From IMG/VR virus record IMGVR_UViG_3300017917_003143, positions 124,001-188,000 of that record: 64,000 nucleotides of DNA. The stretch is one strand, 5' to 3'. The stretch's first letter is position 1; each line of letters starts with the position of its first letter. Shown here piece by piece: positions 30,946-47,728 of this stretch. Under the pieces are notes generated by a model. It ran no database searches, was not told the origin of the DNA, and was given only the letters and a program-made list of their open reading frames with translations. The translations under genes and the position numbers were made by a program.

Positions 30946-31215
30946 ATGGGCCGAACCTTGTTCAAACCCAATCCTCGCAGTCGTCAGGTCTGGGAAGACC
31001 TCGATCGTTATCTCAACTTTTGTGTGGACTATGGCTATCGCTATGATCCAGCAGATCTCTATAACAACCGGAGTTATCCATTCCAGCAGTTCCGTAAATT
31101 AGAAGCTGGCAAGGATCCTAAAGACATGTGGACTGAAGACAGCCGCAGATTTGCAGGCTATCGTCCAGATTTCAAGCGTGACGATCGCCGCCCTCGTGGA
31201 GATCGCCGTGCGTAA
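30946..31215 (+). CDS. hypothetical protein
   Basis: 89 aa, SD AAGGA. Confidence 0.7.
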   Translation: MGRTLFKPNPRSRQVWEDLDRYLNFCVDYGYRYDPADLYNNRSYPFQQFRKLEAGKDPKDMWTEDSRRFAGYRPDFKRDDRRPRGDRRA

Positions 31216-32401
31216 ACTATACTACATGGGCCTTGAGTCATACGAGGCTCGTTATACACTACAACTCACAGAATGGAATCGACGTGTTTTTGACCGCCGT
31301 GGCCTAGATGTTGTGTATGTGCCTGGATCAACTATTGACAATACCAAGAGTATTTCAGTAGGTCAGGTTTTAGACGCACACGGTCGCAGTTATTTTGGCA
31401 TGAGCCAGATGATGAATCTTGTACAGATGATGCGAAATGGAGAGGTCACAAATGAAGATGTCATTTATTTCGAAGATATGTTCCAGCCCGGTATCGAGAG
31501 CTTACCTTACATTATGGATCAGATCCCTGCAAATGATCGCCCTCGCATTTACGTTCGCTGTCTTGCTCAATCCATTGATCCTGATGATTTCGTACATGTA
31601 TGGGGTATGGCGAAATGGATGGGACTCTACGAACAAATGGTTAACGAGTTTGTTACAGGAGTTCTCGCCACAAACGAAGAGATGGTTGCTCATATGCGGA
31701 TTGCTGGATGGACTGCTCCTATATACAATATTAGTGGTCTAGCATTTGGCAAAGATGAAGTTCTCAGTCGAGTACAACTTCCTACTCCTTTTGAACAAAG
31801 ACCCAAGCGTGTGGGTTTTGCCGCGAGATTCGATCAAGAAAAGCAACCAGGATTCTTCATGGACTTGGTAGAAGAATATCAAAAGGTCTACCCAGATGTA
31901 CAGTTTGCTATCTATCAGGGCGGACCATTGCGTTCGAACAATCCTGAATACATCGATCGCGCTCGTCGATTAGAGTCCGAAGGTAAACTTTTGATTTTTG
32001 AAAATCTAAGCAAGAACGAATACTACCATCATCTGGCACACAACACTCGAGTGTTGTTTAACTGTGCCTTGCAAGACTGGGTTTCAAACACTGTCAGCGA
32101 AGCAGATACCTTGGGCTGTAATGTGCTGTATCCTGCTTATCGTAGTTTCCCAGAAACCTTTGCCAATGATCCTGATCGTTTGTATATTCCTTGGAGCGAA
32201 GACGATGCCTTCAACAAGTTGACAAATCTCTTGCGCACTCCACATCACAACATGGGATTGATTTCTGAATGGAACAATCGAACCATCGATCGTATCGTAG
32301 ATATCATCGAAGGCAATGGTGAACAATGGAATCGTAGCGGTAATCGTTACAGAGATCACGTTCCATACGCCAAATACCCAGTGGTCAAGATTGAAGAATG
32401 A
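31208..32401 (+). CDS. GT-B fold glycosyltransferase
   Basis: ARFDQEKQP; SEADTLGCNVLYP; likely GTG start 31208. Confidence 0.75.
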   Translation: MRKLYYMGLESYEARYTLQLTEWNRRVFDRRGLDVVYVPGSTIDNTKSISVGQVLDAHGRSYFGMSQMMNLVQMMRNGEVTNEDVIYFEDMFQPGIESLPYIMDQIPANDRPRIYVRCLAQSIDPDDFVHVWGMAKWMGLYEQMVNEFVTGVLATNEEMVAHMRIAGWTAPIYNISGLAFGKDEVLSRVQLPTPFEQRPKRVGFAARFDQEKQPGFFMDLVEEYQKVYPDVQFAIYQGGPLRSNNPEYIDRARRLESEGKLLIFENLSKNEYYHHLAHNTRVLFNCALQDWVSNTVSEADTLGCNVLYPAYRSFPETFANDPDRLYIPWSEDDAFNKLTNLLRTPHHNMGLISEWNNRTIDRIVDIIEGNGEQWNRSGNRYRDHVPYAKYPVVKIEE

Positions 32402-33351
32402 GTAGAATAATTGTAACAGGCGCAGGTGGATACATCGGAGGCCAGACAGTATTGAAACTGTTAGATCAAGGTCATAGTGTATATGCAGTTGATCAAACAC
32501 TTCCGCCACCTCATCTAATGGACGTCGGATGCAAATGGCTCACAGGTGACTTTGCCGGAGAAGTATTTTTAAGCTCTATCAAAAGTTTCAATCCAGAAGC
32601 CATCATCCATTGCGCCGGGACCAGTCTAGTAGGCCCTAGTGTAACCAATCCAATGTTGTACTATGACAATAACTTTGTCAAAACTAAAACAATGTTGGAT
32701 TACTTGATCCAAAACAAACTCACTGACATTCGTGTGATTTTTAGTTCTTCAGCGGCTACATATGGAGAACCGATAATGACTCCGTGCCAAGAAGAAGATC
32801 CAGCATTGCCGATCAGTCCTTATGGTGAAAGCAAACTCATGATCGAAATGATGATGAAAGCCTACGCCAATGCTTACGACTTGGATTTTGTTGCCTTCCG
32901 TTACTTCAATGCTTGCGGTGCTGATAGCCAAGCTCGTCATGGGCAAGCACCAGGTGCCACGCATATCATTGCTCGGGTACTTGAAAGTATTAGAGACGGC
33001 AAAGATTTTACTTTGTATGGCGATAACTATCCCACTCCTGATGGAACATGTATAAGAGATTACATACACGTGGAAGACATCGCTAATGCACACATCATGG
33101 CGATAAACTCGTCCGTTCCTGCAGGTGTTTATAACCTTGGCACGAATCAAGGCGCCAGCAATCGAGAAATCATTGCCATGTCTGAAAAAGTAACAGGACA
33201 ACAGGTTGATCTTGCAGTGGGTCCTATCCGTGCTGGAGATCCTGCTGTGCTCACTGCGTCAGCTGAACGATTTAACTCTATCAGTGGGTGGGCACCACAG
33301 TTTAATCTCGAAGACATGGTCCGACATGCCTGGACTTGGTATGTTCGATAA
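32398..33351 (+). CDS. galE: UDP-glucose 4-epimerase
   Basis: TGAGGYIG, SSSAATYG, YGESK, FRYFNACG, RDYIHVED. Confidence 0.92.
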   Translation: MSRIIVTGAGGYIGGQTVLKLLDQGHSVYAVDQTLPPPHLMDVGCKWLTGDFAGEVFLSSIKSFNPEAIIHCAGTSLVGPSVTNPMLYYDNNFVKTKTMLDYLIQNKLTDIRVIFSSSAATYGEPIMTPCQEEDPALPISPYGESKLMIEMMMKAYANAYDLDFVAFRYFNACGADSQARHGQAPGATHIIARVLESIRDGKDFTLYGDNYPTPDGTCIRDYIHVEDIANAHIMAINSSVPAGVYNLGTNQGASNREIIAMSEKVTGQQVDLAVGPIRAGDPAVLTASAERFNSISGWAPQFNLEDMVRHAWTWYVR

Positions 33352-33919
33352 GATACTAAAGTTTGAAAATGAGTTGGCAGAGTACACAGGTGCTCCCTAT
33401 GCCATCATGACTGACTGCTGTACACATGCCATCGAACTGTGTTTGCGGCATGACAAGATCAGAGAATGCCAGTTCACTGCTTATACATATCTTTCAATAC
33501 CCATGCTCATGCACAAGTTGGGCATAGAGTATCAATTGATAGATCAGACTTGGACTGGCGAATATCATTTTATCAATACCAGAGTCTGGGATAGTGCTCG
33601 CAGATTAGAAAGAGGAATGTATCGCCCTGGATCCATGCAGTGCTTGAGCTTTGGTTACGGAAAACCCCTGGAGATTGGCCGTGGCGGAGCGATATTGTTG
33701 GATGATCAACGAGCTTACGAAATCATGATAAAGCAACGCTATGATGGGCGAGACTTGTCTATCATGCCCTGGCAAGATCAGCGAGAATTCAGTGTTGGAT
33801 ATCATTACAAACCCACCATCGAAGAAGCCGTGCGAGGTTCAGAATTATTGCCTCTGGTCAATGAGGAACCTAAATATGTACAGTACCCAGACTGTAGAAA
33901 TTTTATAATTAAGGATTAA
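33341..33919 (+). CDS. short DegT/DnrJ-type PLP aminotransferase
   Basis: CTHAIEL, DSA, SFGYGKPLEIGRGGAI; 192 aa only. Confidence 0.7.
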   Translation: MFDKILKFENELAEYTGAPYAIMTDCCTHAIELCLRHDKIRECQFTAYTYLSIPMLMHKLGIEYQLIDQTWTGEYHFINTRVWDSARRLERGMYRPGSMQCLSFGYGKPLEIGRGGAILLDDQRAYEIMIKQRYDGRDLSIMPWQDQREFSVGYHYKPTIEEAVRGSELLPLVNEEPKYVQYPDCRNFIIKD

Positions 33920-33921
33920 AA

Positions 33922-34464
33922 ATGTTTAACGCGGTTCATCTCGATTTTGATTTTAAACCCCTGCTCGATGCTGACTATTCAGTACACATGGGCAGTTGTA
34001 TCAAGCACCAGGTCTACGAACTAACTGATATACACGAAAAGTATGGCGGTTTTCCTGACAGCTATAATATACACAATACCAAGATACACCAACTATGGTG
34101 GGACAAGACACAGGTGGATTACGACGAGCTTGGCCGACAGCTGGGCATGGAAGTGATCACAGTGTCAACCATCAAGCAACCACCAGGGTGCGTGGTTCCG
34201 TTCCATAGAGATACCTTTTTCCAGATCGGCAAACAATACCCAGATCGTACTGAAACCAAAGTCCGAGCCAACATCTATATGGAAGACTATCGCATGGGAC
34301 AGTTTATACAGTACGAGCTCAATGGTAAATTTGAAACCAGTACCAATTGGAAAGCTGGCGATGGATTCATATGGGGTAGTGATGTACTACATGTGAGTTC
34401 AAACGCTGGATTTCAGGACAAGTACACCATGCAGGTTTCTGGATTTCTATTGACAACGGCCTAA
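33922..34464 (+). CDS. 2OG-Fe(II)/cupin-type hydroxylase-like protein
   Basis: VPFHRD...LHVSSN; paralog of 12736..13293. Confidence 0.6.
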   Translation: MFNAVHLDFDFKPLLDADYSVHMGSCIKHQVYELTDIHEKYGGFPDSYNIHNTKIHQLWWDKTQVDYDELGRQLGMEVITVSTIKQPPGCVVPFHRDTFFQIGKQYPDRTETKVRANIYMEDYRMGQFIQYELNGKFETSTNWKAGDGFIWGSDVLHVSSNAGFQDKYTMQVSGFLLTTA

Positions 34465-34478
34465 ATAAACTTTACAAT
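34450..34478 (+). promoter_or_regulatory. folE promoter TTGACA-17-TACAAT with TAAATA in spacer
   Basis: direct reading. Confidence 0.65.
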
Positions 34479-34521
34479 AGCAACAAGACTGGTCATCCTC
34501 GACCCTAACTCGGAGAAAAAA

Positions 34522-35355
34522 TTGACAACATTTACATCAGAAGATCTAGAAAATTCTAAAAAATTAGTAGCAGAAGCACCATACCATCCCGGCTATGAAG
34601 ATGCAGTGATAGACAATGTCCTTGTCGGAGCAGAGCAACAAGGCGATGACGACAAAAATTATCAAGAAGCCTATCTCGGTGATGCTATCCGTTTCAAGAT
34701 GAAGCGTGATCGCAAACGTTTCTGGGCAGGAGACAACATCAGCGACTATGTCAGCGAAGAAGATAAAAAAATCTTGATCGACGAAGCCGCAGAGGCGTTT
34801 GAACTGGTTCTTGATCGTTTGCTGATCGATCGTGAAAACGACCCCAACTCCAAAGGCACAGCACGACGCTTGGCCAAGATGTACTTCAATGAAATAATGG
34901 CAGGACGTTATGACCCAGCACCCAGTGCCACAGCATTTCCAAATGATTCGGAGGACCGTTACGAAGGTATGTTGGTTGTCCGTAGTGAGCTTCGCAGTAT
35001 GTGTAGCCATCATCACCAGCCCGTTAGTGGTGTTGCTTATATTGGTATTATTGCCGCTCATAAACTTATCGGTCTATCAAAGTACACACGCATCGCACAG
35101 TGGTGTGCCCGACGTGGTACTCTCCAGGAGGAACTTGCTAATGATATTTGCAGGGAAATCAGCAAAGCAACCGACAGTCAAAACGTAGGGGTGTATATCC
35201 AAGCAATACATGGTTGCTGTGAGAATCGTGGTATCATGGCACACTCAAGTCTTACACAGACCACTGTGCTCACAGGAGTATTCAAAACAGATCCTGCTGT
35301 GAAAAAAGAGTTCATGGATAATATCAAACTGCAACAAGAGTTTGCACCACGATGA
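34522..35355 (+). CDS. folE: GTP cyclohydrolase I
   Basis: SMCSHHHQP, GLSK, QEEL, HGCCENRG; TTG start with GGAG. Confidence 0.93.
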   Translation: MTTFTSEDLENSKKLVAEAPYHPGYEDAVIDNVLVGAEQQGDDDKNYQEAYLGDAIRFKMKRDRKRFWAGDNISDYVSEEDKKILIDEAAEAFELVLDRLLIDRENDPNSKGTARRLAKMYFNEIMAGRYDPAPSATAFPNDSEDRYEGMLVVRSELRSMCSHHHQPVSGVAYIGIIAAHKLIGLSKYTRIAQWCARRGTLQEELANDICREISKATDSQNVGVYIQAIHGCCENRGIMAHSSLTQTTVLTGVFKTDPAVKKEFMDNIKLQQEFAPR

Positions 35356-36026
35356 CATATTGTCTGAGTCCAATGACCACAAAAGAAATTAGCACCCTGG
35401 TTGGTGCTAATTTTGTTTCTACTTTCCAAACAGAGATGGATGCTGTGTTGGCACCACTGAGAAAATATATTGCGTTGGGCCGACCGTTGAGCTTAGGCAA
35501 AGAACTTTGGGAATACGCAGTAAGCGATAGTATACCCGGTGCTGTTTGGAATGGTGCAGGACACAGTCTCATCGATGTTAAAATTGGATCAGACATTGGC
35601 ATCGACGTTAAAAGTGTGAGCAAACAAGAAAAGTCAAAATTGACCACTGAAGCCAGCATATTCCAAAATTTTAATCAAGATGCCAAGACACATTTTTCTA
35701 ACAAGAATACCCAAGGTGTTTGGGACATACATGTCCAGGGGTGGCTTGATAAAATATCCACGATCAAAAAATACTATATGCTAGGCATTATTCGAGACAA
35801 AGCCACATTGGATTGTTGTCTCTGTGGATTTAAAGTAGTCAGTACTTCTGCCATTTTGTCTGAGTGTCAGCATAGATACACAGGGGCTACTATCAAGTTC
35901 CATGATTTGGTAGATCCAGATTTTGCCGATGTACACTACTACAACAGCAAAAGCCGGTTGGAAATCAAATTTAAAAAACGGTGCTGGTCCGATCCAAATT
36001 ATCATCTCCCAATTTACCAATTTTGA
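35352..36026 (+). CDS. putative PD-(D/E)XK restriction-like endonuclease
   Basis: ELWE...IDVKIGSDIGIDVKS. Confidence 0.45.
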   Translation: MTYCLSPMTTKEISTLVGANFVSTFQTEMDAVLAPLRKYIALGRPLSLGKELWEYAVSDSIPGAVWNGAGHSLIDVKIGSDIGIDVKSVSKQEKSKLTTEASIFQNFNQDAKTHFSNKNTQGVWDIHVQGWLDKISTIKKYYMLGIIRDKATLDCCLCGFKVVSTSAILSECQHRYTGATIKFHDLVDPDFADVHYYNSKSRLEIKFKKRCWSDPNYHLPIYQF

Positions 36027-36042
36027 TTTGGACAGTTAGAAT

Positions 36043-36071
36043 TTGACTTATAATCGGTTTTCACGTATTAT
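36043..36071 (+). promoter_or_regulatory. sigma70 promoter TTGACT-17-TATTAT for subtilase
   Basis: intergenic, optimal spacing. Confidence 0.6.
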
Positions 36072-36100
36072 ATTAAAAGTCATATCGTCTTGGAGAAACT

Positions 36101-38005
36101 ATGCGTAAAACCATTTTGGCTGTCATTGCAATGGCCGCCTTTCCGGTTTATAGCCAAACACCACAGTCCTTTTTAGATATAGAAACCAATAGGACTTCGG
36201 CCGCGGCTGTGGGTGCCAATTGGGCTTGGAGCCGTGGATATACCGGCAAGGGTGCCACTATCTTGATCATGGACTCGGGTATCGATGTCAACAATCGAGA
36301 GTTTGCAGGGCGTATCAAATATTCCATTGACTATACTGCAACAGGATTACAAGACAAAGTAGGACACGGTACCCATGTGGCCGGTATTGCGGCCGCAGCC
36401 AACAATGGATTGGGCACACAAGGTATCGCATATGATGCCAACATCGCAGTGGCCAAGATAACCAATACCAGTTCCGTGAGCATGCAATCAGCGCAGAGAG
36501 CATTGGTCTGGGCCGGACAGTACAGTGATATAGTAGTAGCCAATCTTTCTGCCAACGTCAACTATAGCACCGCATATCTATCAGCCATGCGCCAAGTGGC
36601 ACCAGGCATGTTTGTCAACACAGACAGGATCTATGGCGGTAAAAATTATTACAATCTTGAAAATCCAGGCTCGTGGAAGCTACCAGCCGAAATGGTTCTC
36701 ACGGTGTCTGCTGGTAACAGCCGAGCTGGATTTGTACAAAGTCCGGCAGTATTCGCCACAGCAACAGATGCCTCAGGTAACTTGGTCTTGGGCGGTCGCA
36801 TGTTGGTAGTAGGCAACTGGAACACCAGCCTCAATGTAGTAGAAGGTGCCCAGGCAGGGCATATATGTAAAGACTTTGTCAACAACACTTGCCAAGATCG
36901 TTATCGTACCAGTGATTTTTATATCCTAGCACCAGGATCTGGTATCGTCAGCACTGGTATCGGAGATACCACCCGTACTATGAGTGGTACCAGCCAAGCC
37001 GCGCCTACTGTGGCCGGAGCAGTGGCGGTGATCAATCAAATGTGGCCTTATATGAAAGGTGAGCAGATCGCACAGTTATTGCTCAAGACTGCCAACAAAA
37101 ATCTTCCTGGATATCGTGTTGAAGTCATGGGACAAGGTCTTTTAGATCTTAACAGAGCAACTCAACCCATAGGCAACCTAGGTATCTCAACTACAGGACG
37201 CACTGGTCCTGCTAGACCCATCACAGGATCGATCAGTGTGGCTAATGTGGGTGCTGTAGCTGGTAAATTAAGCTCAGTCACTGTGGTCGATGAATTCCAG
37301 AGAGATTACCGCGTAGACATCAGCAGTATGGCCACTAAAAACATGTGGACGCAGTCAGCGTTCCTACTTGATGCCGCTCCAGGACAAAGCTGGTCAAGTC
37401 GTTGGACCGGAGTTCCAGTGGCATCAAACATGGGTGTATATGGTCAAACATTAGGAAACAATTCTACAGTGACTATTGACACAAGGCATCTCAACCCTAC
37501 TGCACAGTTCAGTCATCAAGTCACTGTGACCAACACAGAAGTCAATCCATTTATACAATTTTCAGGCATGTGGGGCACTGTGCAAGGGGCGACTACATTT
37601 GAATACTCTACAATGTATCGTCCCAAACCCGAAGGGTGGTATGGTCAGATGGGAGTTATGCAAACTTCCACCCGATATCAACCAGGCATGATCGAACGGG
37701 TAGATCCAATTTACAGCGTTCACGCCATGGCCGGTTACCAGATACAAGGTTGGAACCTATTTGGCGGAATCAAACCCACAGTGATCCACGGAAATATAAC
37801 CATGCGATTACCGGGCGATGTTGACAGTGATGGCAATTTACAGTATAATACTACAAAAGTAAGTCTGGCAGGTGCCCGACCAGTGAGTTACATTGGTACC
37901 GGTTGGCAACATCAGTGGCGAGGCGGTCATGGATTTGCTTTCCGTACCATGCTTGCCGAAGACAAATCTAACATGACCCGGGTCAACTATACATATAGGT
38001 TTTAA
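36101..38005 (+). CDS. S8 subtilase with signal peptide and autotransporter-like C-terminal barrel
   Basis: MDSG, HGTHVAG, GTSQAAP; ends VNYTYRF. Confidence 0.85.
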   Translation: MRKTILAVIAMAAFPVYSQTPQSFLDIETNRTSAAAVGANWAWSRGYTGKGATILIMDSGIDVNNREFAGRIKYSIDYTATGLQDKVGHGTHVAGIAAAANNGLGTQGIAYDANIAVAKITNTSSVSMQSAQRALVWAGQYSDIVVANLSANVNYSTAYLSAMRQVAPGMFVNTDRIYGGKNYYNLENPGSWKLPAEMVLTVSAGNSRAGFVQSPAVFATATDASGNLVLGGRMLVVGNWNTSLNVVEGAQAGHICKDFVNNTCQDRYRTSDFYILAPGSGIVSTGIGDTTRTMSGTSQAAPTVAGAVAVINQMWPYMKGEQIAQLLLKTANKNLPGYRVEVMGQGLLDLNRATQPIGNLGISTTGRTGPARPITGSISVANVGAVAGKLSSVTVVDEFQRDYRVDISSMATKNMWTQSAFLLDAAPGQSWSSRWTGVPVASNMGVYGQTLGNNSTVTIDTRHLNPTAQFSHQVTVTNTEVNPFIQFSGMWGTVQGATTFEYSTMYRPKPEGWYGQMGVMQTSTRYQPGMIERVDPIYSVHAMAGYQIQGWNLFGGIKPTVIHGNITMRLPGDVDSDGNLQYNTTKVSLAGARPVSYIGTGWQHQWRGGHGFAFRTMLAEDKSNMTRVNYTYRF

Positions 38006-38006
38006 T

Positions 38007-38387
38007 ATGACAGCAACACTAAAACAAGCCCAAGAACAAGGCATCGCTCCCTGGGACGATGTTTACTTCGAAGACAAAACACTTTGGATTTTCCGAGATC
38101 GGTATCCAGTGAGCCCAGGGCATTTGCTCTTTGTCCCTAAGATCAACAACGACGATAACATCCTGGACTGTTTCCGGTTGGCTCGTAGATACGGTGAATG
38201 GGCAGTACTCAAAGGCGAAGCTGATGGTTACAATGTTGGAATCAACTCAGGTGAGGCAGGCGGACAGACTGTGATGTATCCGCACGTACACATGATTCCT
38301 CGACGGCACGGCGACTGTGAAGATCCTGTGGGCGGTGTGCGTAATGTGATCCCAGGACAAGGAAATTATCGTAAATGGAAATCTTGA
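38007..38387 (+). CDS. HIT family hydrolase
   Basis: PVSPGHLLFVPK, GQTVMYPHVHMIPR. Confidence 0.88.
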   Translation: MTATLKQAQEQGIAPWDDVYFEDKTLWIFRDRYPVSPGHLLFVPKINNDDNILDCFRLARRYGEWAVLKGEADGYNVGINSGEAGGQTVMYPHVHMIPRRHGDCEDPVGGVRNVIPGQGNYRKWKS

Positions 38388-38563
38388 CCGCACTCATGGT
38401 TGTGTTATTGGGCTACCAGGTGACCATGCCTGCGGTAGACAATGCCAAATACACATTCACGGTACACAATGGACAAATCATACGCATGAATACTCAGAAC
38501 GGTTCGTTCGAACGATGCGACGAAGAGCTGAAATGCACACCAGTAAAAGACAACAATAAATAA
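38375..38563 (+). CDS. small exported/membrane protein
   Basis: hydrophobic N-terminus, two Cys. Confidence 0.6.
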   Translation: MEILTALMVVLLGYQVTMPAVDNAKYTFTVHNGQIIRMNTQNGSFERCDEELKCTPVKDNNK

Positions 38564-38617
38564 TGACCTCGACAGCGGCCTTCCTGGCACTTCATCCCGC
38601 TATACAAATTCTGCAGG

Positions 38618-38642
38618 CCTATGCTATAATCTAACATAGGAG
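38618..38642 (+). promoter_or_regulatory. queD extended -10 (TGCTATAAT) inside an SD-occluding hairpin
   Basis: CCTATG 38618-23 / CATAGG 38635-40; SD AGGAG 38638-42. Confidence 0.5.
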
Positions 38643-38649
38643 AATTAAC

Positions 38650-39189
38650 ATGGCAAAATATCTTTCTACAAAAACATATGGCAACGATCGTGGACTATCA
38701 TGCTGTTTCCGCCAATGGCGTTCAACACATAGTCACTGCTCATTGCTACATGGATATTCCATCGGTATCAAACTAATCTTTGAAAGTGAAACACTAGACG
38801 ACCGTAATTGGGTCATGGACTTCGGTGGACTCAAAGCATTCAAAGAATGGAGCGAATACATGTTCGATCACACACTGGTCATTGCTGAAGATGATCCTCA
38901 TCGTGAAATGTTTGAAAAAATGGCCGAGCTTGGTTTACAAGATCAAGGCGGAGTATGTGACATTCGTATTGTGCCAGCTGTAGGTTGTGAAAAGTTTAGT
39001 GAACTGGCTTACAAAACTATGGAAAATATTCTCCGAGCATTCCAAGCAGGCAATTCTTGGTTCCTTGTAGCACAAGATGGAATTACCTTAAAAGAATTCA
39101 ATTGCCGTTACCCTGTTGGTCAAGGTGTCAAGTTACGTTCTGTAGAAGTATTCGAACACAACGCAAACTCAGCAGTCTACGAAGGTTAA
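38650..39189 (+). CDS. queD: 6-carboxy-5,6,7,8-tetrahydropterin synthase
   Basis: CSLLHGY, MDFGG, FDH, E..ANSA; SD AGGAG. Confidence 0.9.
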   Translation: MAKYLSTKTYGNDRGLSCCFRQWRSTHSHCSLLHGYSIGIKLIFESETLDDRNWVMDFGGLKAFKEWSEYMFDHTLVIAEDDPHREMFEKMAELGLQDQGGVCDIRIVPAVGCEKFSELAYKTMENILRAFQAGNSWFLVAQDGITLKEFNCRYPVGQGVKLRSVEVFEHNANSAVYEG

Positions 39190-39191
39190 TC

Positions 39192-40049
39192 ATGAGCACA
39201 ACGCCAAAAGTAGGTATCAACAAAATATGGTCTCAACCAGCCACTCATCAAATATCAGTTTTGCTCCCCACTCGGGGCAGGACTGACATGCTGAAAAGAA
39301 GCCTAATGAGTTTGCTTGATTTGGCCAGCGATCCTACCGAGATAGAGTTGATGATGGCGTTTGACAACGATGACAAAGAGTCTCTTGCATGGTGTCAACA
39401 AAACATTTTTCCTGAATTAGAAAAACGTGGAGTTGACGCCATGGTAATCGAGTTTACTCCGTTAGGGTATCTTAGATTGCATGAATATCTCAATGCCTTG
39501 GCCGGATTGGCCAATGGCGGTTGGTTGATGTTTTGGAACGATGATGCAGTGATGCAAACCCAAGACTGGGATAAAAAAATTACCGAGCACAATGGAAAGT
39601 TCTTGTGTTTGCGTATGCCCACACACAATCAACATCCTTATGCTATCTTTCCTATCGTACCTAGAGACTGGTACTACTTGTTGGGACATCTCAGCAATCA
39701 TCAGCTCACTGATGCCACTATCAGCCAAATATCCTATGTGCTGAATATCATGAAAAACATTGATGTCGAAGTTTTGCATGATAGATTTGACATCACTGGC
39801 AACAACGGTGATACAACATTTAAAAATCGTCCAATGCTGGAAGGGAATCATGAGGATCCTCGAGACTTCAATCATGTGATTTTCCGCAACAAACGCATAG
39901 CAGATGCCAATCGCATCGCATGGTATCTCGAGCGCATCGGTCAGCCCAGCGAATGGTTTACGGAAGTGATGACAGGAAAAAAAGACCCCTGGGAATACAT
40001 GCTCAGTGAAGAACAAGATCCAAATGGACAAGTAAGAATACATGCTTAA
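39192..40049 (+). CDS. GT2 family glycosyltransferase
   Basis: ISVLLPTRGR, MFWNDD. Confidence 0.75.
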   Translation: MSTTPKVGINKIWSQPATHQISVLLPTRGRTDMLKRSLMSLLDLASDPTEIELMMAFDNDDKESLAWCQQNIFPELEKRGVDAMVIEFTPLGYLRLHEYLNALAGLANGGWLMFWNDDAVMQTQDWDKKITEHNGKFLCLRMPTHNQHPYAIFPIVPRDWYYLLGHLSNHQLTDATISQISYVLNIMKNIDVEVLHDRFDITGNNGDTTFKNRPMLEGNHEDPRDFNHVIFRNKRIADANRIAWYLERIGQPSEWFTEVMTGKKDPWEYMLSEEQDPNGQVRIHA

Positions 40050-40830
40050 TATCGATCAACACTTATTAGATAAAATCAAGGCTTACTGGAATCGCCAGCC
40101 TTGTAACATATTACACGGTCGTAGCGAGCTTGGGACTCCTGAGTTTTATCAAGAAGTGTCCGAGCGCCGTTATCGTGTAGAACCACACATCAGAGAGTTT
40201 GCTGGATTCCATCTATGGGCTGGCAAGCGAGTGCTGGAGATTGGCTCAGGCATCGGCAGTGATGCTGAAGAGTTTGCCAAGCGTGGTGCTGAATACGTAG
40301 GTGTGGACTACAGCGATCAGAGTGTAGAGATTTCCCGACAACGGTTCCAAGTCCTTGAACTTGATGGCGAGTTCCACAATATTGACGCCAGCGATACCTC
40401 GGCTTTAGAGTCATTGGGACAGTTCGATCTTGTGTACAGTTATGGTGTGATACATCACTTTCCTGCCATTGACACCATCATCGACAATGTACATCGTGTG
40501 CTCAAACCCGATGGAGAATTCCGATTCATGGTGTATGCCAAGAACTCTTGGAAATATGCTATGATACAAAAAGGTCTGGATCAATTTGAAGCACAAAGCG
40601 GTTGTCCTTATGCACAGGCATATACCAGAGAAGATATCTATCGCATGCTGGAAGGTCAATTCCATGTGGAACGACTACGCCAGGATCATTGCTTTATGTA
40701 CAATGTACCTGCGTACAAACGTGGTGAATATGAACTAGAACCGTGGTTTGAAGCCATGCCTGAAGATGTTCGACAAGCAGTAAAAGAATACTTGGGATGG
40801 CATTTGCTGGTCAAGGCTAAAAAGATATAA
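40042..40830 (+). CDS. class I SAM methyltransferase
   Basis: VLEIGSGIG, FDLVYSYGVIHH, LKPDG. Confidence 0.85.
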   Translation: MLNIDQHLLDKIKAYWNRQPCNILHGRSELGTPEFYQEVSERRYRVEPHIREFAGFHLWAGKRVLEIGSGIGSDAEEFAKRGAEYVGVDYSDQSVEISRQRFQVLELDGEFHNIDASDTSALESLGQFDLVYSYGVIHHFPAIDTIIDNVHRVLKPDGEFRFMVYAKNSWKYAMIQKGLDQFEAQSGCPYAQAYTREDIYRMLEGQFHVERLRQDHCFMYNVPAYKRGEYELEPWFEAMPEDVRQAVKEYLGWHLLVKAKKI

Positions 40831-41573
40831 TGAGAAACTTACAACGATACCTACAAGATGTTGCCAACGCCAGGAGGCAAGAACTACTTCCTTATATGTT
40901 CCATGTCACTGATGCCCAGGTACAGACTGGGCCATTCGCTGGGATCACTCTTATACCCAGATACATGTGGGGCGATGGAGACACAGCGGCCAAGCTCATG
41001 GGCGTCTATGAAGATGAACTACATGACTTTGTTGAACAAGCGATCAAACAAGATCCGGACACTGTGATCAATGTTGGCTGTGCCGAAGGTTATTACAGCG
41101 TGGGATTCGCAAAGCGTTTGCCCAAGGCCAAAGTGCTGGCAGTAGACATCGATCTAAGAGCGGCGCTGATAGTGAGAGACACAGCATCGGCTAACCAGCT
41201 TACGAATCTTGAAGCTGTAACTTATACTGTAGATCATTCTTGGTTGGAACAAAAATGCCAACCTACAACAAATCCTTTGTTGGTATTTGACTGTGAAGGT
41301 GCCGAGTTGGATCTGCTTGATCCTGTCAAAGTTCCTTCCTTGACCAAGTGTTCGATCATGGTTGAGTGTCATGACTGCATGAATCTGCCAATCACATCTA
41401 CACTGCTGTCACGATTTGGATCTACACACGACATCCAGCAAGTGTCTCAGACCTACAAAGATTCTTACCAATTTGAGTTTTTAAAACATCTCAGTGACTG
41501 CGACAAGTGGGCCTTGGTCCATGAAGGAAGACCCAGCACTATGAGTTGGTTATACATGGTGCCCAAACAATGA
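40830..41573 (+). CDS. FkbM-like methyltransferase
   Basis: INVGCAEGYY, FDCEGAE. Confidence 0.7.
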   Translation: MRNLQRYLQDVANARRQELLPYMFHVTDAQVQTGPFAGITLIPRYMWGDGDTAAKLMGVYEDELHDFVEQAIKQDPDTVINVGCAEGYYSVGFAKRLPKAKVLAVDIDLRAALIVRDTASANQLTNLEAVTYTVDHSWLEQKCQPTTNPLLVFDCEGAELDLLDPVKVPSLTKCSIMVECHDCMNLPITSTLLSRFGSTHDIQQVSQTYKDSYQFEFLKHLSDCDKWALVHEGRPSTMSWLYMVPKQ

Positions 41574-42295
41574 AAAACTATCTATTCAAAAGTTTGTTCC
41601 AAGTACGCGATCCAAACTGGCATTTCAAAGACCGCAGTGGCGAACAAGATCTACATAAAAAATATGTAGAGATGCATCAAATTTCCGTTGGCAGTTACAC
41701 ACGTCATCTCAAAGGCAACTGGGAACTAAAATTCATACAAGGCACGGTTGACAACATCAATGATGCGTTCAAACGAACCTTTAGAGAAATTTACGACCTG
41801 TGGCGGCAAGGCAACACAAACATCTTTTATACAGATCCTGATACCATTGCTATCAAAGACATTGATCCTTGGCAAATATCTGATCAGTTTATGATGTTTA
41901 ATTTTACAGATCCTAAGAGTTTGGGAACCAACAATCAATACGGTCGCAAGTTTCCACACTTTTTCAATGCTGGTGTAAGATTCTTCCCTGCAGGCATGGA
42001 ACAGCGGATCTGGGACATTGGGCTAGAAATGCTTGACAACTGGGAAGAAGGCACATATAACACAGAACAAACCATACTCAATGCCATGCTTTGGGATCAA
42101 GGAGTCACCTTAGATCAAGTGTTGCGCCCCGAATGGGCATACCAAGCGCAATGGTTGCCTAATCAAGCACCGCTGTGGGTACAGGATACATGGAATGGTG
42201 TTGATATCAATCGAAGCTTGATCATACACACCCATAGCAGTAGAGACATCGATGAGAAGCTGGCCTTCATGAAACAACTGTCTGGACAGGCATGA
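41570..42295 (+). CDS. nucleotide-diphospho-sugar transferase (GT-A)
   Basis: FYTDPD, FNAGV, EQTILN. Confidence 0.6.
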   Translation: MKNYLFKSLFQVRDPNWHFKDRSGEQDLHKKYVEMHQISVGSYTRHLKGNWELKFIQGTVDNINDAFKRTFREIYDLWRQGNTNIFYTDPDTIAIKDIDPWQISDQFMMFNFTDPKSLGTNNQYGRKFPHFFNAGVRFFPAGMEQRIWDIGLEMLDNWEEGTYNTEQTILNAMLWDQGVTLDQVLRPEWAYQAQWLPNQAPLWVQDTWNGVDINRSLIIHTHSSRDIDEKLAFMKQLSGQA

Positions 42296-42897
42296 AAGAT
42301 ATATTCACCAACATCGTTGAGCACGGACAGTGGAGAGCAGGCCACACAGTGTGTGGTAATGGTAGCACCATGCACTACACTGATTATCTGCGCCAACACC
42401 TCAGCGCATTCCTAGAGAAGCACCAAATCAGTTCGATGTTTGATGCACCTTGTGGGGATTACACATGGATGAGCCAAATCCAGCTTTCAGCTAACTTACG
42501 TTATATCGGCGGGGACATTGTTGACAGTTTGATTGAAAAAAACAAGCAATCTTATCCAACTGTAGATTTTCGTGTAGTTGACATAGCCCAAGATGATTTA
42601 CCTGATGTAGATTTGCTTTTTTGTCGAGATTGTTTGATACATTTTAGTCATGCTGATATACGCAGAGTGTTTGAAAATATCTCTCGTAGCAGTATAAAAT
42701 ATGTGTTGATGACTAACTATGCTCATTCAGACAACTCAGACATTGCCACCGGAGGATTCCGTGGAGTTAATTTTCTTCAGGCACCGTACGAATTTGAAGC
42801 ACCCATAGACAGTATCGAAGATTGGGTACCAGGGTATGCACCAAGAAGTATGTGCCTTTGGAACCGTGAAACCATTATTGGATATTTAGAAAAATGA
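42292..42897 (+). CDS. class I SAM methyltransferase
   Basis: FDAPCGD, YIGGDIV, CRDCLIH. Confidence 0.8.
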   Translation: MKDIFTNIVEHGQWRAGHTVCGNGSTMHYTDYLRQHLSAFLEKHQISSMFDAPCGDYTWMSQIQLSANLRYIGGDIVDSLIEKNKQSYPTVDFRVVDIAQDDLPDVDLLFCRDCLIHFSHADIRRVFENISRSSIKYVLMTNYAHSDNSDIATGGFRGVNFLQAPYEFEAPIDSIEDWVPGYAPRSMCLWNRETIIGYLEK

Positions 42898-43472
42898 AAA
42901 AAGTTTATGTAAGCTGGACCGATGTACAAAGACAAACACAAGAAATCATAAGACAGATGTATCTAGATGAGTGGCGCCCAGACTACATCGTAGGTATCAC
43001 TCGAGGAGGCTTGGTACCGGCCAATCTTATCAGTCAATATCTTGACGTACCAATGTATGCTCTGCAAGTACGATTAAGAGATGGCGGCGATGAAGATTGT
43101 GAAAGCAATCTCTGGATGAGCGAAGAAGCATTTGGATATCACAGAACCGATGACTTGCCTGGGGCAAGCAATCCTACCCTTAGGAAAAATATTCTCATCG
43201 TAGACGATATAAACGACTCAGGCGCCACTATAAACTGGATACGCCAAGACTGGCAAACAACTTGCTTGCCCGACGACCCGGCCTGGGCCAATATCTGGGG
43301 CAACAATGTACGTATAGCCACACTGTATGACAACGAGACCAGTGCCGCGGAAATTTATGTAAATTACACAGCCGAAACAGTAAACAAATTCGAAGATCCG
43401 CAGTGGATAGTATTCCCCTGGGAAGAGTGGTGGAAGAAATGGCATCCCAATGAAGAACACATCAAGTCCTGA
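42894..43472 (+). CDS. purine phosphoribosyltransferase (Gpt-like)
   Basis: GITRGGLVP, LIVDDINDSGAT, WIVFPWE. Confidence 0.85.
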   Translation: MKKVYVSWTDVQRQTQEIIRQMYLDEWRPDYIVGITRGGLVPANLISQYLDVPMYALQVRLRDGGDEDCESNLWMSEEAFGYHRTDDLPGASNPTLRKNILIVDDINDSGATINWIRQDWQTTCLPDDPAWANIWGNNVRIATLYDNETSAAEIYVNYTAETVNKFEDPQWIVFPWEEWWKKWHPNEEHIKS

Positions 43473-43941
43473 AATACTTTTGGTCATGGTGCATGTTTGG
43501 CAGGACATGCCCGAATTAGAAAACATACGCTGGCAAGAATTTAGCCAATTGATAGTAGACAAGGCCAACAGTATCAATTGGCCAAAAATTTGGCAATTTG
43601 ATTTTATCGATAAAAATACATTCAATTCGTTGAAACAAAACAAGATCGTTCAAAACAGCCAGGTGATGCCTCAAGGAAAAGTACCACACACCGATATCGT
43701 ATATGGACCCAATGATTGGATCTCTACTTCAGATTCGCAAACTGCCCAGATCATAAAATCGATAAATCCCACGATAGTCATCTTCGGCGGGCTACACAAA
43801 GATCTATGTGTGACCGGAGTAAAACTGGCTGTAGAGGATGATCAAAGAGAATATTTTGTTAGTGACAGACTGGCGTACACTTGGAAAGAAACCGCAGCCG
43901 CTGTTTACAAGGATTGGGGAAATGATACAACCGTTACGTGA
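43450..43941 (+). CDS. isochorismatase-like (possibly degenerate) protein
   Basis: IVIFGGLHKDLCV. Confidence 0.35.
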   Translation: MKNTSSPEILLVMVHVWQDMPELENIRWQEFSQLIVDKANSINWPKIWQFDFIDKNTFNSLKQNKIVQNSQVMPQGKVPHTDIVYGPNDWISTSDSQTAQIIKSINPTIVIFGGLHKDLCVTGVKLAVEDDQREYFVSDRLAYTWKETAAAVYKDWGNDTTVT

Positions 43942-44347
43942 TGACTTGATGGTACAGCAACAGCTACCAAAGATAACCGATTGGACGCATCGTTGGTTAC
44001 ACATGGTGGCTGTGATAATGCTCAATCAAACAGGACGCAAGCCCGTGAAAACAGTGTTTCCAGTATTTGCCGAACGCTGGCCACATCCACTGAATTTCCT
44101 GGAAGCTACCGAAACTGAAGTCAAAGATGTGATCTGGCCCTTGGGCATGGTCAATGTTCGGTACAATAGGTTAAGAAGAATGACCCAAGACTACTTTACT
44201 TGGGACGGAGAAGATGCTACAATGTTATATGGTATTGGCAAATATGGGTCGGACAGCTATGAGATATTCTTCAAACAGAACTATGCTGTTGAGCCCACAG
44301 ACAAAGAACTAAAAAGGTACTTAGATGAAGAAGTATTCGTTTCATGA
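43922..44347 (+). CDS. MBD4-like HhH-GPD DNA glycosylase
   Basis: IMLNQT, PLG...R, LYGIGKYGSDSYEIF. Confidence 0.85.
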   Translation: MIQPLRDDLMVQQQLPKITDWTHRWLHMVAVIMLNQTGRKPVKTVFPVFAERWPHPLNFLEATETEVKDVIWPLGMVNVRYNRLRRMTQDYFTWDGEDATMLYGIGKYGSDSYEIFFKQNYAVEPTDKELKRYLDEEVFVS

Positions 44348-44666
44348 TGTTGGTGGCGAGATAGTCAAAGACAACGAAGTTTATTTGTTGAAAGACAATC
44401 ACGATCTAAATAATCTCGTGCTGAGCTCTACCAAGCTCTACAGGCATCAACAAACTCGTGGGCACAGGCACCCTGGACAAGAAGAAGTATATTTCTTTAT
44501 ACAAGGCACAGGAAAGATGATCGTAGGCGAAGAAACCGATGAACCTTTTTCTGTCAGTGCTGGAGATATTGTGTTGATCCCTGATGGTGCATTTCATCGT
44601 GTGATCAACGATGGAGAGACACATTTAATTTTTAATTGCGTATTTGATGGCAAAAGGAATCATTGA
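44325..44666 (+). CDS. cupin domain protein
   Basis: GHRHPGQEEVY...G; GDIVLIP.G.FH. Confidence 0.85.
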   Translation: MKKYSFHDVGGEIVKDNEVYLLKDNHDLNNLVLSSTKLYRHQQTRGHRHPGQEEVYFFIQGTGKMIVGEETDEPFSVSAGDIVLIPDGAFHRVINDGETHLIFNCVFDGKRNH

Positions 44667-45547
44667 TGGAAAAGATTACATACACAGAGATATTTTACAG
44701 CATCCAAGGTGAAGGACGTTGGGCAGGTGTGCCCAGTGTATTCTTCCGCACATATGGATGCAACTTCCGCTGTCGTAAGTTTGGTCGTCCGCGAGACGAA
44801 CAGCTGGAAGGACACAATCCTGAAGTGATCGAGATCATCAAGAACATCGATCAATACAAAAAGTTTGAAGACTTGCCTTTGGCCAAAACTGGCTGTGACA
44901 GCTATGCCAGCATTTACCCTGAGTTCAAGCGATTCAACGAACAAGACAGCGTAGAAACTATCGTAGACAAGATGCATGCTCTCATACCCAACAATCGTTG
45001 GGATCAAGGCATAGGTGATGACGTGCATCTCGTGATTACAGGTGGTGAGCCATTGCTGGGTTATCAGCAACTGTATCCTGATCTCATCGAATACTGTCGT
45101 CGAGCTGGTCTACGCAATCTAACATTCGAGACCAACGGCAGCCAGCCTTTGCATCCAGAAGTGTATGAATATTTGTTTGAAGAGTTTACACGTCATGGCA
45201 GAGACTACGACAAGCTGACATTCAGTGTGAGCCCAAAACTACCTTGCTCGGGCGAAGCATGGGATGTAGCAATCAATCCCAAAGTGGTCAAGAGCTATGA
45301 AATGGTAGGCATGACTTATCTCAAGTTTGTTGTGGCCACACCACAGGATGTGGCAGATGCTGAACGTGCTGTGGAAGAATATCGAGAAGCCGGTTTTGGC
45401 GGCCCTGTGTATCTCATGCCCATGGGCGGTGTACCTGATGTATACAATCTCAACACACAGCAAGTGGCAACATTGGCCATGGAACGTGGATGGCGTTACA
45501 GTCCTAGACTACAAGTGGATATCTGGCGTAATGCTTGGGGTACCTGA
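44663..45547 (+). CDS. queE: 7-carboxy-7-deazaguanine synthase (radical SAM)
   Basis: SIQGEG, FRTYGCNFRC...CDS, ITGGEP, ETNG, SPK, YSPRLQ. Confidence 0.9.
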   Translation: MMEKITYTEIFYSIQGEGRWAGVPSVFFRTYGCNFRCRKFGRPRDEQLEGHNPEVIEIIKNIDQYKKFEDLPLAKTGCDSYASIYPEFKRFNEQDSVETIVDKMHALIPNNRWDQGIGDDVHLVITGGEPLLGYQQLYPDLIEYCRRAGLRNLTFETNGSQPLHPEVYEYLFEEFTRHGRDYDKLTFSVSPKLPCSGEAWDVAINPKVVKSYEMVGMTYLKFVVATPQDVADAERAVEEYREAGFGGPVYLMPMGGVPDVYNLNTQQVATLAMERGWRYSPRLQVDIWRNAWGT

Positions 45548-45548
45548 C

Positions 45549-45785
45549 ATGGGTGACGTGATGGCAGCCCCACGTGAAGAAGACTGGGGTCTGCAACAAG
45601 CACGTGGTTGGAAGTTGAAGCTATGCTGGCGGCCACAGACATGTTTCTTGACTGGAAAACAGTTATGGGGACGTCGTGCCTATCACGGTGTACGTATGAT
45701 CACAGGCCCGGGTGAACCGGTGTTTGATCATTATTGGGTCGAGCGTGATCAGTTCTTGTTGTGGAACTTAATGCGTGGAAAATAA
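45549..45785 (+). CDS. hypothetical protein
   Basis: ATG after queE stop within ORF 45327..45785. Confidence 0.6.
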   Translation: MGDVMAAPREEDWGLQQARGWKLKLCWRPQTCFLTGKQLWGRRAYHGVRMITGPGEPVFDHYWVERDQFLLWNLMRGK

Positions 45786-46257
45786 CAACGCCAAAGGCCG
45801 AAACAGTTTTGATGTTACTACCGGTAATGTAGTAGTTCAGTTCTTTAACAGAAACATAACTCCCTACCCTACAGAAGCTGGCGGGCCTAAGTTTGACCTC
45901 ATACCAGTTGAAAAACAAAAAGACATCATGGTCAATGTGGCCAGGATGCATGCCCAACAAGAATACGACCGCATACTTGAACTGGTTGCAGTGCTACAGC
46001 GTCAGGCGGCCGGAATTAAACGACGTCTAGACATCACTGACATGGTACATTCGGCTCAATATCAATTCCAAACTTACCATGGACAGGTCTATTGGTTAGT
46101 ACAAGACACACGACACAATAAAATTATACTGTCACATCTTGGTCCCAGCGACTGGAGCACTGGTTCTCCAGAAAACTATCAATACATCGCCAGAGTAAAA
46201 TGGCTGGGTGATTATACATGGTGTGAAGTAGATGAATATGGAAATCCAGTAGAATGA
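45775..46257 (+). CDS. DUF2452-like protein
   Basis: IKRR...YQFQ..GQVYWL...LS..P.DW. Confidence 0.55.
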   Translation: MENNNAKGRNSFDVTTGNVVVQFFNRNITPYPTEAGGPKFDLIPVEKQKDIMVNVARMHAQQEYDRILELVAVLQRQAAGIKRRLDITDMVHSAQYQFQTYHGQVYWLVQDTRHNKIILSHLGPSDWSTGSPENYQYIARVKWLGDYTWCEVDEYGNPVE

Positions 46258-46964
46258 CAGTGATGTTTAACGGTTGCAGTTTTGTAGAACAAAGCCATCT
46301 TGAACTGGAAAGCGATCAGTGGAGGCAACAATACTGGCCTGCACTGCTGTTTGATCATCACGACAACATATCAGCATCAGGAGCATCAAACACTAGGATC
46401 TTCCGCACCACGATAGATTATTTGTACACCCATTCTCCCAGTGTTGTTTTTATTGGGTGGACTGGTTTAGATCGAGAAGAACTACCCTGTGCCAATGGCG
46501 ATCGCATGCGATTGAGAGCTGACTGCACCAGCTTTGAAAATGACCAGGATTCCATCTCTCGAGAAGTACACAAGACATGGTATGTGGAAAACCACAATGA
46601 GTGGTTGAGTTTTGAGCAACTGCTAAGACAAATATTGATCATCCAAGATCTATGTAGCATGCGAGGCATCACGTGTTGGATGTTCAATGCGTTCCATCAC
46701 AATTACATCGCTTACCCTGGACAACTGCTACAGCACAATTTCAATGTAAAGAATGAAAAATGGTTCCATAAGAGAATAGATGATCTCGAGCATGTAAAAC
46801 AGTTGATATCAAACATCAATCAGGACCAGTGGATATGGCCGTTTAAATCTTCCCTGGGTGGCTGGGCAAGACAACAGAATCTTGAGTTTGAATCTGCTGG
46901 GCACCCTGCACTGTCTGCACAAGCATCAATCGCTAATTTTATAAAAAGTCGAATCAATGAGTAA
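46254..46964 (+). CDS. SGNH/GDSL-like protein
   Basis: GCSF, GASNTRIFR, GHP. Confidence 0.6.
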   Translation: MTVMFNGCSFVEQSHLELESDQWRQQYWPALLFDHHDNISASGASNTRIFRTTIDYLYTHSPSVVFIGWTGLDREELPCANGDRMRLRADCTSFENDQDSISREVHKTWYVENHNEWLSFEQLLRQILIIQDLCSMRGITCWMFNAFHHNYIAYPGQLLQHNFNVKNEKWFHKRIDDLEHVKQLISNINQDQWIWPFKSSLGGWARQQNLEFESAGHPALSAQASIANFIKSRINE

Positions 46965-47322
46965 AGTCTATATAGAACCACCGGATCATCGAGCAAAGAT
47001 AGTTTACGAAATTGAAGAGCCCGATGGAGGTTGGCGTAGAGTATTTACTGACGAAGAAAAGCGAAAGCTCAAACCCATAGCCGAAACCTTGGCCATGCTG
47101 GATGGCAATGCTTTTTTTGGTATCAGCATAGATCACTATGAAGGCTACTTGGCCGAGGCCGATGCTGTATATCGTAACAATGGTGGAGATGACGGTTGGG
47201 CATCAACAGCGAGTTGGGTGCAGGATTTTAAGATGATCCAAGAAGATCCTACTCTCAAGGATGCATATGATAAATTACAAGTGCTATTAGAACTTAAAAG
47301 GAAAGAAAATGGGGATATTTGA
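46957..47322 (+). CDS. hypothetical protein
   Basis: coupled ORF. Confidence 0.7.
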   Translation: MSKVYIEPPDHRAKIVYEIEEPDGGWRRVFTDEEKRKLKPIAETLAMLDGNAFFGISIDHYEGYLAEADAVYRNNGGDDGWASTASWVQDFKMIQEDPTLKDAYDKLQVLLELKRKENGDI

Positions 47323-47725: not shown

Positions 47726-47728
47726 TCG

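Follow-up and report, generated by a model that had tools for sequence, protein, structure and literature searches.

The gene at positions 36101 to 38005 of the window, the 64,000-nucleotide stretch of phage DNA analysed here, encodes a 634-residue protein of the subtilase family (peptidase S8) that carries an export signal at its N-terminus and a predicted 12-stranded outer-membrane beta-barrel at its C-terminus; we refer to it as the S8-barrel protein. The window (G000:C1:124001-188000) is part of an IMG/VR virus record of 343,632 bp, which is estimated to be 99% complete. We consider it very likely that the product is a protease anchored in the outer membrane by its barrel, and likely, with less assurance, that the protease passenger lies outside the cell. 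The account that we favour as a whole, and hold to be somewhat better than an even proposition, is that of an autotransporter-like (type Va-like) minimal subtilase, made early by the phage in a Gram-negative host and displayed at the cell surface, where it would cleave surface proteins. That the shaving of receptors or other surface proteins is the function under selection is a tentative proposal, made by analogy with known systems. The parts of the protein, in window coordinates, are as follows.

36101..38005, plus strand: coding sequence of the S8-barrel protein, an uninterrupted open reading frame of 634 residues with an ATG start, read without any alternative genetic code, stop codon included
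36101..36154, plus strand: Sec-type signal peptide, residues 1-18, by inspection and by conservation in 41 homologues
36245..37111, plus strand: Peptidase S8 (subtilase) domain, residues 49-337, Pfam PF00082
36272-36274, 36365-36367, 36716-36718 and 36992-36994: catalytic residues D58, H89, the oxyanion residue N206 and S298, respectively
37007..37168, plus strand: last helices of the S8 fold, residues 303-356, the start of a C-terminal module common to FG-GAP-barrel proteins
37169..37342, plus strand: linker, residues 357-414, with a predicted local distance difference test score (pLDDT) below 50; it holds invariant columns, D397 and R401 among them
37343..37435, plus strand: pre-barrel segment of two short helices, residues 415-445, a candidate pore-lumen segment
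37436..38002, plus strand: predicted outer-membrane beta-barrel of 12 strands, residues 446-634, by AlphaFold2 and structural search
37988..38002, plus strand: C-terminal beta-signal Y-T-Y-R-F, with aromatic residues at -1, -3 and -5, read from the sequence and its conservation

The signal peptide comprises a basic n-region (MRK), a hydrophobic core and the residues V-Y-S ahead of an invariant Gln19, with cleavage predicted before Q19, and a signal peptide opens essentially all of the complete viral homologues. No lipobox is found at the cleavage site of the window protein, whose first cysteine is residue 256; a lipobox followed by a run of glycines is present in 20 of 60 viral homologues. The match of the following domain to PF00082 scores 105.3 bits against a cut-off of 21.8 (E 4.6e-30), and D58 (in DSG), H89 (in HGTH), N206 and S298 (in GTS) lie in canonical motifs in the canonical order and are invariant in the 41 homologues. 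The AlphaFold2 model of the domain has a pLDDT of about 90 and superimposes on Bacillus lentus subtilisin (Savinase) with a TM score of 0.86 (Foldseek, E 2.7e-20), while the autotransporter Ssp (8e7f), which heads the PDB sequence matches for the S8 part, also appears among the Foldseek matches. Sequence, catalytic set and the modelled subtilisin-type alpha/beta fold all place the domain in family S8, and proteolytic activity is predicted. Against NF051851, the NCBIfam model of the Pseudomonas autotransporter EprS, the protein scores 61.7 bits, below the equivalog cut-off of 1700. The only cysteines, C256 and C264 (36866-36892), are eight residues apart and both are invariant in the same 41 homologues. 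The autotransporter pathway tolerates small disulphide loops only, and a lone, tight cysteine pair in the passenger fits this tolerance by analogy.

Twelve strands were obtained for the C-terminal region in both the whole-protein and the isolated-domain AlphaFold2 models, the latter, built from 41 aligned homologues, having a pLDDT of 83.9 and a predicted template-modelling score of 0.79. The terminal residue, F634, is kept in at least 90% of these 41 homologues, and phenylalanine or tryptophan is the last residue in 53 of the 63 complete viral homologues. Because the Foldseek E-values for the barrel were weak, we compared the barrel model exhaustively with 48,161 PDB chains using VIA-align. 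The top matches are all outer-membrane barrels, with 12-stranded barrels ranking first: KdgM (Z 12.8), the NalP translocator (Z 12.0, 190 residues), EspP (Z 11.8, 206 residues), NanC (Z 11.4) and AIDA-I (Z 11.1), followed at Z 10.4-10.8 by EstA (10.8, 201 residues), Hbp, BrkA and AaaA. The autotransporter matches cover nearly the whole model; their alignments start at model residues 1-6 (4-6 for NalP and EspP), whereas those of plain porins start at around residue 38. The autotransporter alignments therefore take in the pre-barrel segment, which would be compatible with a placement of this segment inside the pore.

A preliminary description of the window, made from its sequence alone, had read this gene as a phage-encoded subtilase autotransporter under a host-type promoter, on the grounds of a signal peptide, a full D/H/S triad, alternating beta-strands in the C-terminal region and a terminal YxYxF motif. 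These features were all borne out by the analyses above and, for the promoter and the phage origin, by those below. The purposes that it suggested for a protease displayed by infected cells (removal of receptors or pili, degradation of matrix, or a use against predators) are conjectures. The term autotransporter itself stands in part. Three features of type Va systems are present, namely the signal peptide, a 12-stranded C-terminal barrel of autotransporter size and shape, and the terminal aromatic beta-signal, and the same genome encodes a second protein whose C-terminus scores above the Pfam Autotransporter cut-off, which we count as support. What did not hold is kinship in sequence: no match to PF03797 (Autotransporter) was found at E<=1 in any of the 41 barrel members, a scan of the phage genome for this family picked out only the gene of the second protein, and a profile of the barrel gave no match among PDB sequences at E<=10.

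Further results weigh against the autotransporter account. The hhalign probability between the barrel profile and the PF03797-type protein of the same phage is below 1%. Foldseek comparison of the barrel with the PDB is weak (best E 8.5e-3), and in the exhaustive search the top match is a plain porin, KdgM, with Z scores of about 12 that exceed background by a moderate margin only. The helix ahead of the barrel is short and interrupted (helices at residues 415-435), and the passenger has no beta-helical stalk. None of our results points to a substrate for the protease, and a sequencing-run search returned a pond DNA metagenome alone, with no RNA run. A Pfam scan of the 41 barrel domains gave scattered chance matches, none of them in more than one member, and a HMMER scan of 1.84 billion representative proteins found the barrel family in 143 clusters, with the match always at the very C-terminus and nothing bridging it to the classical autotransporters. 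As judged from these searches, the barrel is a sequence orphan and not a member of the classical autotransporter family by sequence.

The barrel might instead anchor a protease that faces the periplasm and degrades envelope components such as lipoprotein or OmpA tethers, or periplasmic defence proteins, for lysis or takeover of the envelope; besides the absence of kinship to autotransporters, this would suit the weak linker helix and the fact that the porins KdgM and NanC match the barrel as well as NalP does. However, a cysteine-poor passenger with one tight pair points outward, as do the lipoprotein variants with long glycine spacers and the FG-GAP or G5 adhesin-type modules seen among the relatives, and an early promoter fits poorly with a role in lysis. 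We also know of no characterised protein with an N-terminal enzyme and a C-terminal 12-stranded barrel that is not an autotransporter (EstA and NalP being examples), and on balance we regard a periplasm-facing enzyme as unlikely.

Comparison with described systems clarifies what is familiar in the S8-barrel protein and what is not. The S8 autotransporters NalP (Neisseria), SphB1 (Bordetella), Ssp (Serratia) and EprS (Pseudomonas) have the same order of parts, with a signal peptide, an S8 passenger, a 12-stranded barrel and a terminal aromatic residue. NalP and SphB1 are lipoproteins; many of the phage homologues are lipoproteins too, though the window protein, lacking a lipobox, is not among them. 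The phage protein differs from these autotransporters in being much shorter, in having neither beta-helix nor stalk, in its barrel of about 190 rather than about 250-280 residues, in the absence of detectable homology to PF03797, and in being conserved in lytic-type jumbo phage. EstA of Pseudomonas aeruginosa (3kvn), a GDSL esterase, likewise sets a globular enzyme without a beta-helix on a 12-stranded barrel and probably stays attached, but it is bacterial, has another enzyme family as its passenger and shows no sequence similarity. The 12-stranded porins KdgM and NanC, of which KdgM gives the best structural score for the barrel alone (Z 12.8; NanC 11.4), differ in having no N-terminal enzyme, in alignments that cover only 135-152 residues from model residue 38, and in having no sequence match.

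Phages mask or modify receptors through small outer-membrane proteins or glycan-modifying enzymes. Several phage proteins (Lom and Bor of lambda, Llp of T5, and Cor) enter the outer membrane of the host during infection or lysogeny, and interference with receptors has been proposed for them and shown for Lom and Llp. A survey of huge phages reported 1,603 barrel outer-membrane proteins in 1,303 huge phages (678 freshwater), and its text mentions neither autotransporters nor subtilases (10.64898/2026.10.24.761521). The four named proteins and those of the survey are plain barrels or lipoproteins that mask receptors, and none is described as carrying a protease, whereas the barrel in the window bears an intact enzyme. 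As far as we searched the full-text literature, no lytic or jumbo phage has been described as encoding a subtilase autotransporter, nor has export of an intact protease to the host surface been described for a lytic-type jumbo phage. On sequence and models, the S8-barrel protein would thus appear to be a largely phage-borne, previously undescribed variant of the subtilase autotransporters.

The gene is widespread among uncultured phages. A word-indexed search returned at least 850 homologues, many of them full length and about 50% identical, and nearly all metagenomic. Our scan of IMG/VR found relatives in 101 viral stretches, from which 79 loci were kept, some of them on large contigs (295, 340, 307 and 213 kb). 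The S8-barrel gene is conserved across at least 67 different contigs of uncultured phages, almost always within a single cassette of GTP cyclohydrolase I (GCH1), S8, HIT and QueD-like genes. Homologues of the window's GCH1, HIT, PTPS, phosphoribosyltransferase, QueE-like, glycosyltransferase and methyltransferase genes stand no more than a few kilobases from it in most of the 79 loci; two loci (L002 and L084) are syntenic, and a homologue of the window's DNA polymerase is also visible in 3 of the 79. Longer variants carry 150-900 additional N-terminal residues, in which the only Pfam match is one G5 domain. Among GenBank phages the gene gave no megablast match and one partial tblastn match at 34% identity; barring records outside the search set, the lineage is therefore not among deposited phages. 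In UniProt, uncultured freshwater phages are already represented by entries under automatic names such as 'Peptidase S8/S53 domain containing protein' or 'Autotransporter beta-domain containing protein', so the sequences have been seen before, if not studied.

The barrel is not confined to subtilases. There are 74 barrel-bearing proteins of at least 400 residues, 27 with an S8 domain and 47 without, and all ten that we scanned from the latter group are FG-GAP repeat lipoproteins of about 800 residues. By sequence, the barrel family thus appears to carry two passengers, the S8 domain or an FG-GAP propeller, the second as judged from the ten scanned. One FG-GAP-barrel gene (L099:1032-3398, plus strand) occupies the slot of the S8 gene, downstream of GCH1 and overlapping the HIT start, and a second (L098:112-2517) lies in the same type of slot. 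The window protein is 33% identical over 317 residues to the FG-GAP-barrel protein P0127 (BLASTP, E 3e-54), and the similarity starts at S8 residue 303, inside the subtilase fold and just past the catalytic serine. With some 315 C-terminal residues in common, the FG-GAP form therefore looks like the S8-barrel protein with its first 300 or so residues replaced. In the FG-GAP-barrel lipoproteins (P0127, P0158 and UniProt A0A6J5L9S5) the homology over this C-terminal part is true homology, but the N-terminal part, including the whole catalytic set, has given way to an FG-GAP beta-propeller. BFVD places such proteins in viruses (match E 4.8e-11), and a feature search of the ESM Atlas gave viral matches with scores of 0.83-0.85, which are below the trusted level and serve as a lead only.

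These observations fit, at the level of sequence, a conserved unit made up of the last S8 helices, a glycine-rich motif, the linker and the barrel, which would behave as a translocation module with exchangeable cargo. The motif, P-I-G-x-L-G-I-S-T-T-G-R-T-G (residues 356-369, window 37166-37207), is near-invariant although it lies in a stretch modelled as disordered, and it may serve for cleavage or release, or take part in translocation. The FG-GAP variants keep it too.

The signals upstream of the S8-barrel gene, and the gene that follows it, are these.

36043..36071, plus strand: sigma70-like promoter, TTGACT-17-TATTAT, its -10 element ending 29 nt before the ATG
36092..36097, plus strand: Shine-Dalgarno-like GGAGAA, read directly, with GGAG-type sites at the same place in relatives
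38007..38387, plus strand: HIT-family gene, Pfam HIT

The promoter sits in the 74-nt gap upstream of the gene. A match at 10 of 12 positions is weak evidence by itself; however, each of the 15 related phage loci checked has a comparable or better sigma70-like site at -56 to -63 relative to the start codon, within a spacer that has otherwise diverged, and the same site at about -60 lies upstream of the FG-GAP variants in L098 and L099. No such site is present at that position upstream of the copies in two bacterial loci (L003 and L086). Across the window, sigma70-like sites matching at 10 or more of 12 positions number 21 on the plus (coding) strand and 5 on the minus strand; over this region the phage seems to make broad use of host-type promoters. 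Several of these sites lie directly upstream of other genes, such as GCH1 (at 34450) and the PTPS gene (at 38601). A perfect sigma70 consensus, TTGACA-17-TATAAT (37821-37849, plus strand), occurs within the barrel-coding region about 160 nt before the HIT gene; it is not conserved in 14 relatives, and we set it aside as due to chance or specific to the lineage.

The unmodified host polymerase reads such promoters early in infection by T4-like phages. As a sigma70-type promoter can be read in this way, the S8-barrel gene is, by analogy, probably an early gene. Its stop codon, TAA, and the start of the HIT gene are 1 nt apart (window 38003-38009), and the two are adjacent or overlapping in most related loci, the FG-GAP variant included. 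This tight and recurrent junction indicates that the two genes probably form one transcription unit, and it suggests that translation of the surface protein is coupled to that of a HIT-family nucleotide hydrolase or transferase.

Taken together, these features lead us to propose the following course of events. Unmodified host RNA polymerase would transcribe the S8-barrel and HIT genes from the sigma70-type promoter; the product would be exported by Sec and cleaved by signal peptidase I; and the beta-barrel assembly machinery would insert the C-terminal 190 or so residues into the outer membrane as a 12-stranded barrel, with the terminal phenylalanine serving as beta-signal. The subtilase, of about 340 residues, would then reach the surface through or alongside the barrel, tethered by the conserved linker, and the active protease would cleave surface-exposed proteins of the infected cell. 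The likeliest benefit would be the destruction of receptors, such that superinfecting phages are excluded and progeny are spared adsorption to infected cells and debris. We infer the early timing, the surface exposure, the substrates and the benefit, the surface exposure because passage of the linker through the pore is itself inferred.

NalP of Neisseria and SphB1 of Bordetella trim other surface proteins, and the activity proposed here would be a counterpart of theirs. Across the loci, identity to the window is 36-58% for the S8-barrel protein and mostly 62-86% for GCH1; this more rapid divergence is in keeping with contact between the protein and the host surface, as, so far as sequence can tell, is the replacement of the enzyme by a binding-type propeller. 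If surface shaving is indeed the function, it would add a catalytic mechanism to those known for superinfection exclusion and the protection of progeny.

The same evidence bears on another possible benefit, in which the gene would be an auxiliary metabolic gene and its product, at the surface or released, would digest environmental proteins and supply amino acids to the infected cell over the long cycle of a jumbo phage in nutrient-poor water. The location of the gene within an island of metabolic and modification genes and the pond source are compatible with this, and peptidases are counted among the widespread auxiliary functions of huge phages (10.64898/2026.10.24.761521). The gene, however, diverges faster than its neighbours; the fact that related phages have a non-catalytic FG-GAP propeller in place of S8 on this barrel, at the same genomic position, argues for interaction at a surface rather than nutrition, and no genes for peptide uptake were seen adjacent. 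We consider a nutritional role improbable.

The protease could also mature other phage-encoded surface proteins, as NalP and SphB1 do in bacteria, and the second autotransporter-like protein of the genome is a candidate substrate. This is a 664-residue protein encoded outside the window (G000:C1:45456-47450, plus strand; L091:175-2169), with a PF03797 beta-domain scoring 36.4 bits. No PF03797 match was found in five related large contigs of S8-barrel phages, one of them 98% complete; the pairing of the two proteins is therefore not conserved, and we think a dedicated maturase very unlikely. The second protein has a signal peptide and a threonine-rich linker and ends in V-V-R-F; its C-terminal 264 residues give the PF03797 match (cut-off 26 bits), whereas the full-length query gives no Pfam match. 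A gene for a TerC-family membrane protein adjoins it on the opposite strand.

Full-length copies are also found in bacteria, in metagenome-assembled genomes of Hylemonella (Comamonadaceae), where they stand in ordinary chromosomal settings among genes for an ABC transporter, AmiC, TsaE and QueG (L003, L085 and L086) and match their flanks in G+C content. That the window gene is itself a bacterial gene without a phage role, brought in by mis-binning, chimeric assembly or recent accidental capture, as close full-length homologues in genuine Hylemonella chromosomes might suggest, is scarcely credible for a gene that has its place in the middle of a contig, within a virus record of 343.6 kb, recurs in synteny across dozens of diverged phage contigs behind a promoter conserved on the phage side, keeps all of its catalytic and export signals, and has bacterial copies that form a tip clade inside the phage copies. 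In a maximum-likelihood tree of 70 sequences, midpoint-rooted, this clade of three bacterial copies falls within the syntenic phage copies, having L025 as its sister and L010 as the next branch, at 100% support in the Shimodaira-Hasegawa-like approximate likelihood ratio test (SH-aLRT). The nesting suggests transfer from phage to bacterium and suggests that Comamonadaceae are the hosts of that sub-clade, providing a hint as to which host an uncultured group of phages infects. Our scan of bacterial genomes with two peptide patterns found 2 full-length copies, and is too insensitive to establish rarity in bacteria; a Methylophilaceae-labelled homologue (P0108) was left out, its context being ambiguous between a bacterial island and a phage.

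A broader and more speculative account would be that a widespread clade of freshwater jumbo phages possesses a type V-like module of its own for the early display of exchangeable passengers, either a subtilase or an FG-GAP propeller. This module would consist of about 315 residues (the last S8 helices, the P-I-G-x-L-G-I-S motif, the linker and the 12-stranded barrel) and would be unrelated in sequence to bacterial autotransporter domains; the subtilase would be a receptor-destroying enzyme, a counterpart of viral neuraminidase, and Hylemonella-type bacteria would have acquired their copies from phages. We put this forward as a possibility that we doubt more than we trust. If it is true, phages maintain and diversify their own module for secretion and display, and a compact barrel of about 190 residues with exchangeable passengers might find use in surface display.

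The wider setting agrees with a phage origin. The window encodes a DNA polymerase of family B, an exonuclease and a clamp-loader-like ATPase. Among deposited sequences, the best relatives of the polymerase come from jumbo myoviruses, namely Sinorhizobium phage Phosso (49.8%), Agrobacterium phage Atu_ph07 (46.7%) and Vibrio phage 2.275.O (44.7%). From these genes it follows that the S8-barrel gene belongs to a large phage of lytic type; judged by its gene content, the phage is a jumbo, myovirus-type, lytic-type phage, and the S8-barrel gene is phage-encoded. Its host is probably a Gram-negative, freshwater member of the Burkholderiales, and the pond metagenome, possibly its source, is the only sequencing run found to contain the sequence. 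The preliminary description would have counted the lack of a predicted barrel, or a structural role in the virion, against its reading. A barrel is predicted, the gene lies among genes for replication and for nucleotide or sugar modification and not in a structural module, and the PHROG matches of the protein are confined to 'protease' and a family of unknown function, with no structural family among them.

Elsewhere in the window, two very large open reading frames on the plus strand (3274-8301, 1675 residues, and 15348-18653, 1101 residues) are matched by PHROGs of unknown function only. Between GCH1 and the S8-barrel gene lies an open reading frame of 224 residues (35352-36026, plus strand), with no Pfam or PHROG match and no homologue in related loci. 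The relatives have different genes at this spot, such as one for an FG-GAP/DUF4214 protein in L002; we considered this neighbour as a barrel protein and rejected it, as hhalign showed no relation to the barrel profile.

The S8-barrel gene is flanked by genes for GTP cyclohydrolase I, a HIT protein, a QueD/PTPS-like protein, a glycosyltransferase, several methyltransferases, a phosphoribosyltransferase, and QueE-like and B12-binding radical-SAM enzymes. The stretch from about 31000 to 51000 is a dense island of modification genes, in which these enzymes, with at least three methyltransferases, are accompanied by an epimerase, an HhH-GPD-like protein, two DUF6071 proteins and a cytidylyltransferase; the product of the island may be a modified base or a nucleotide-sugar.

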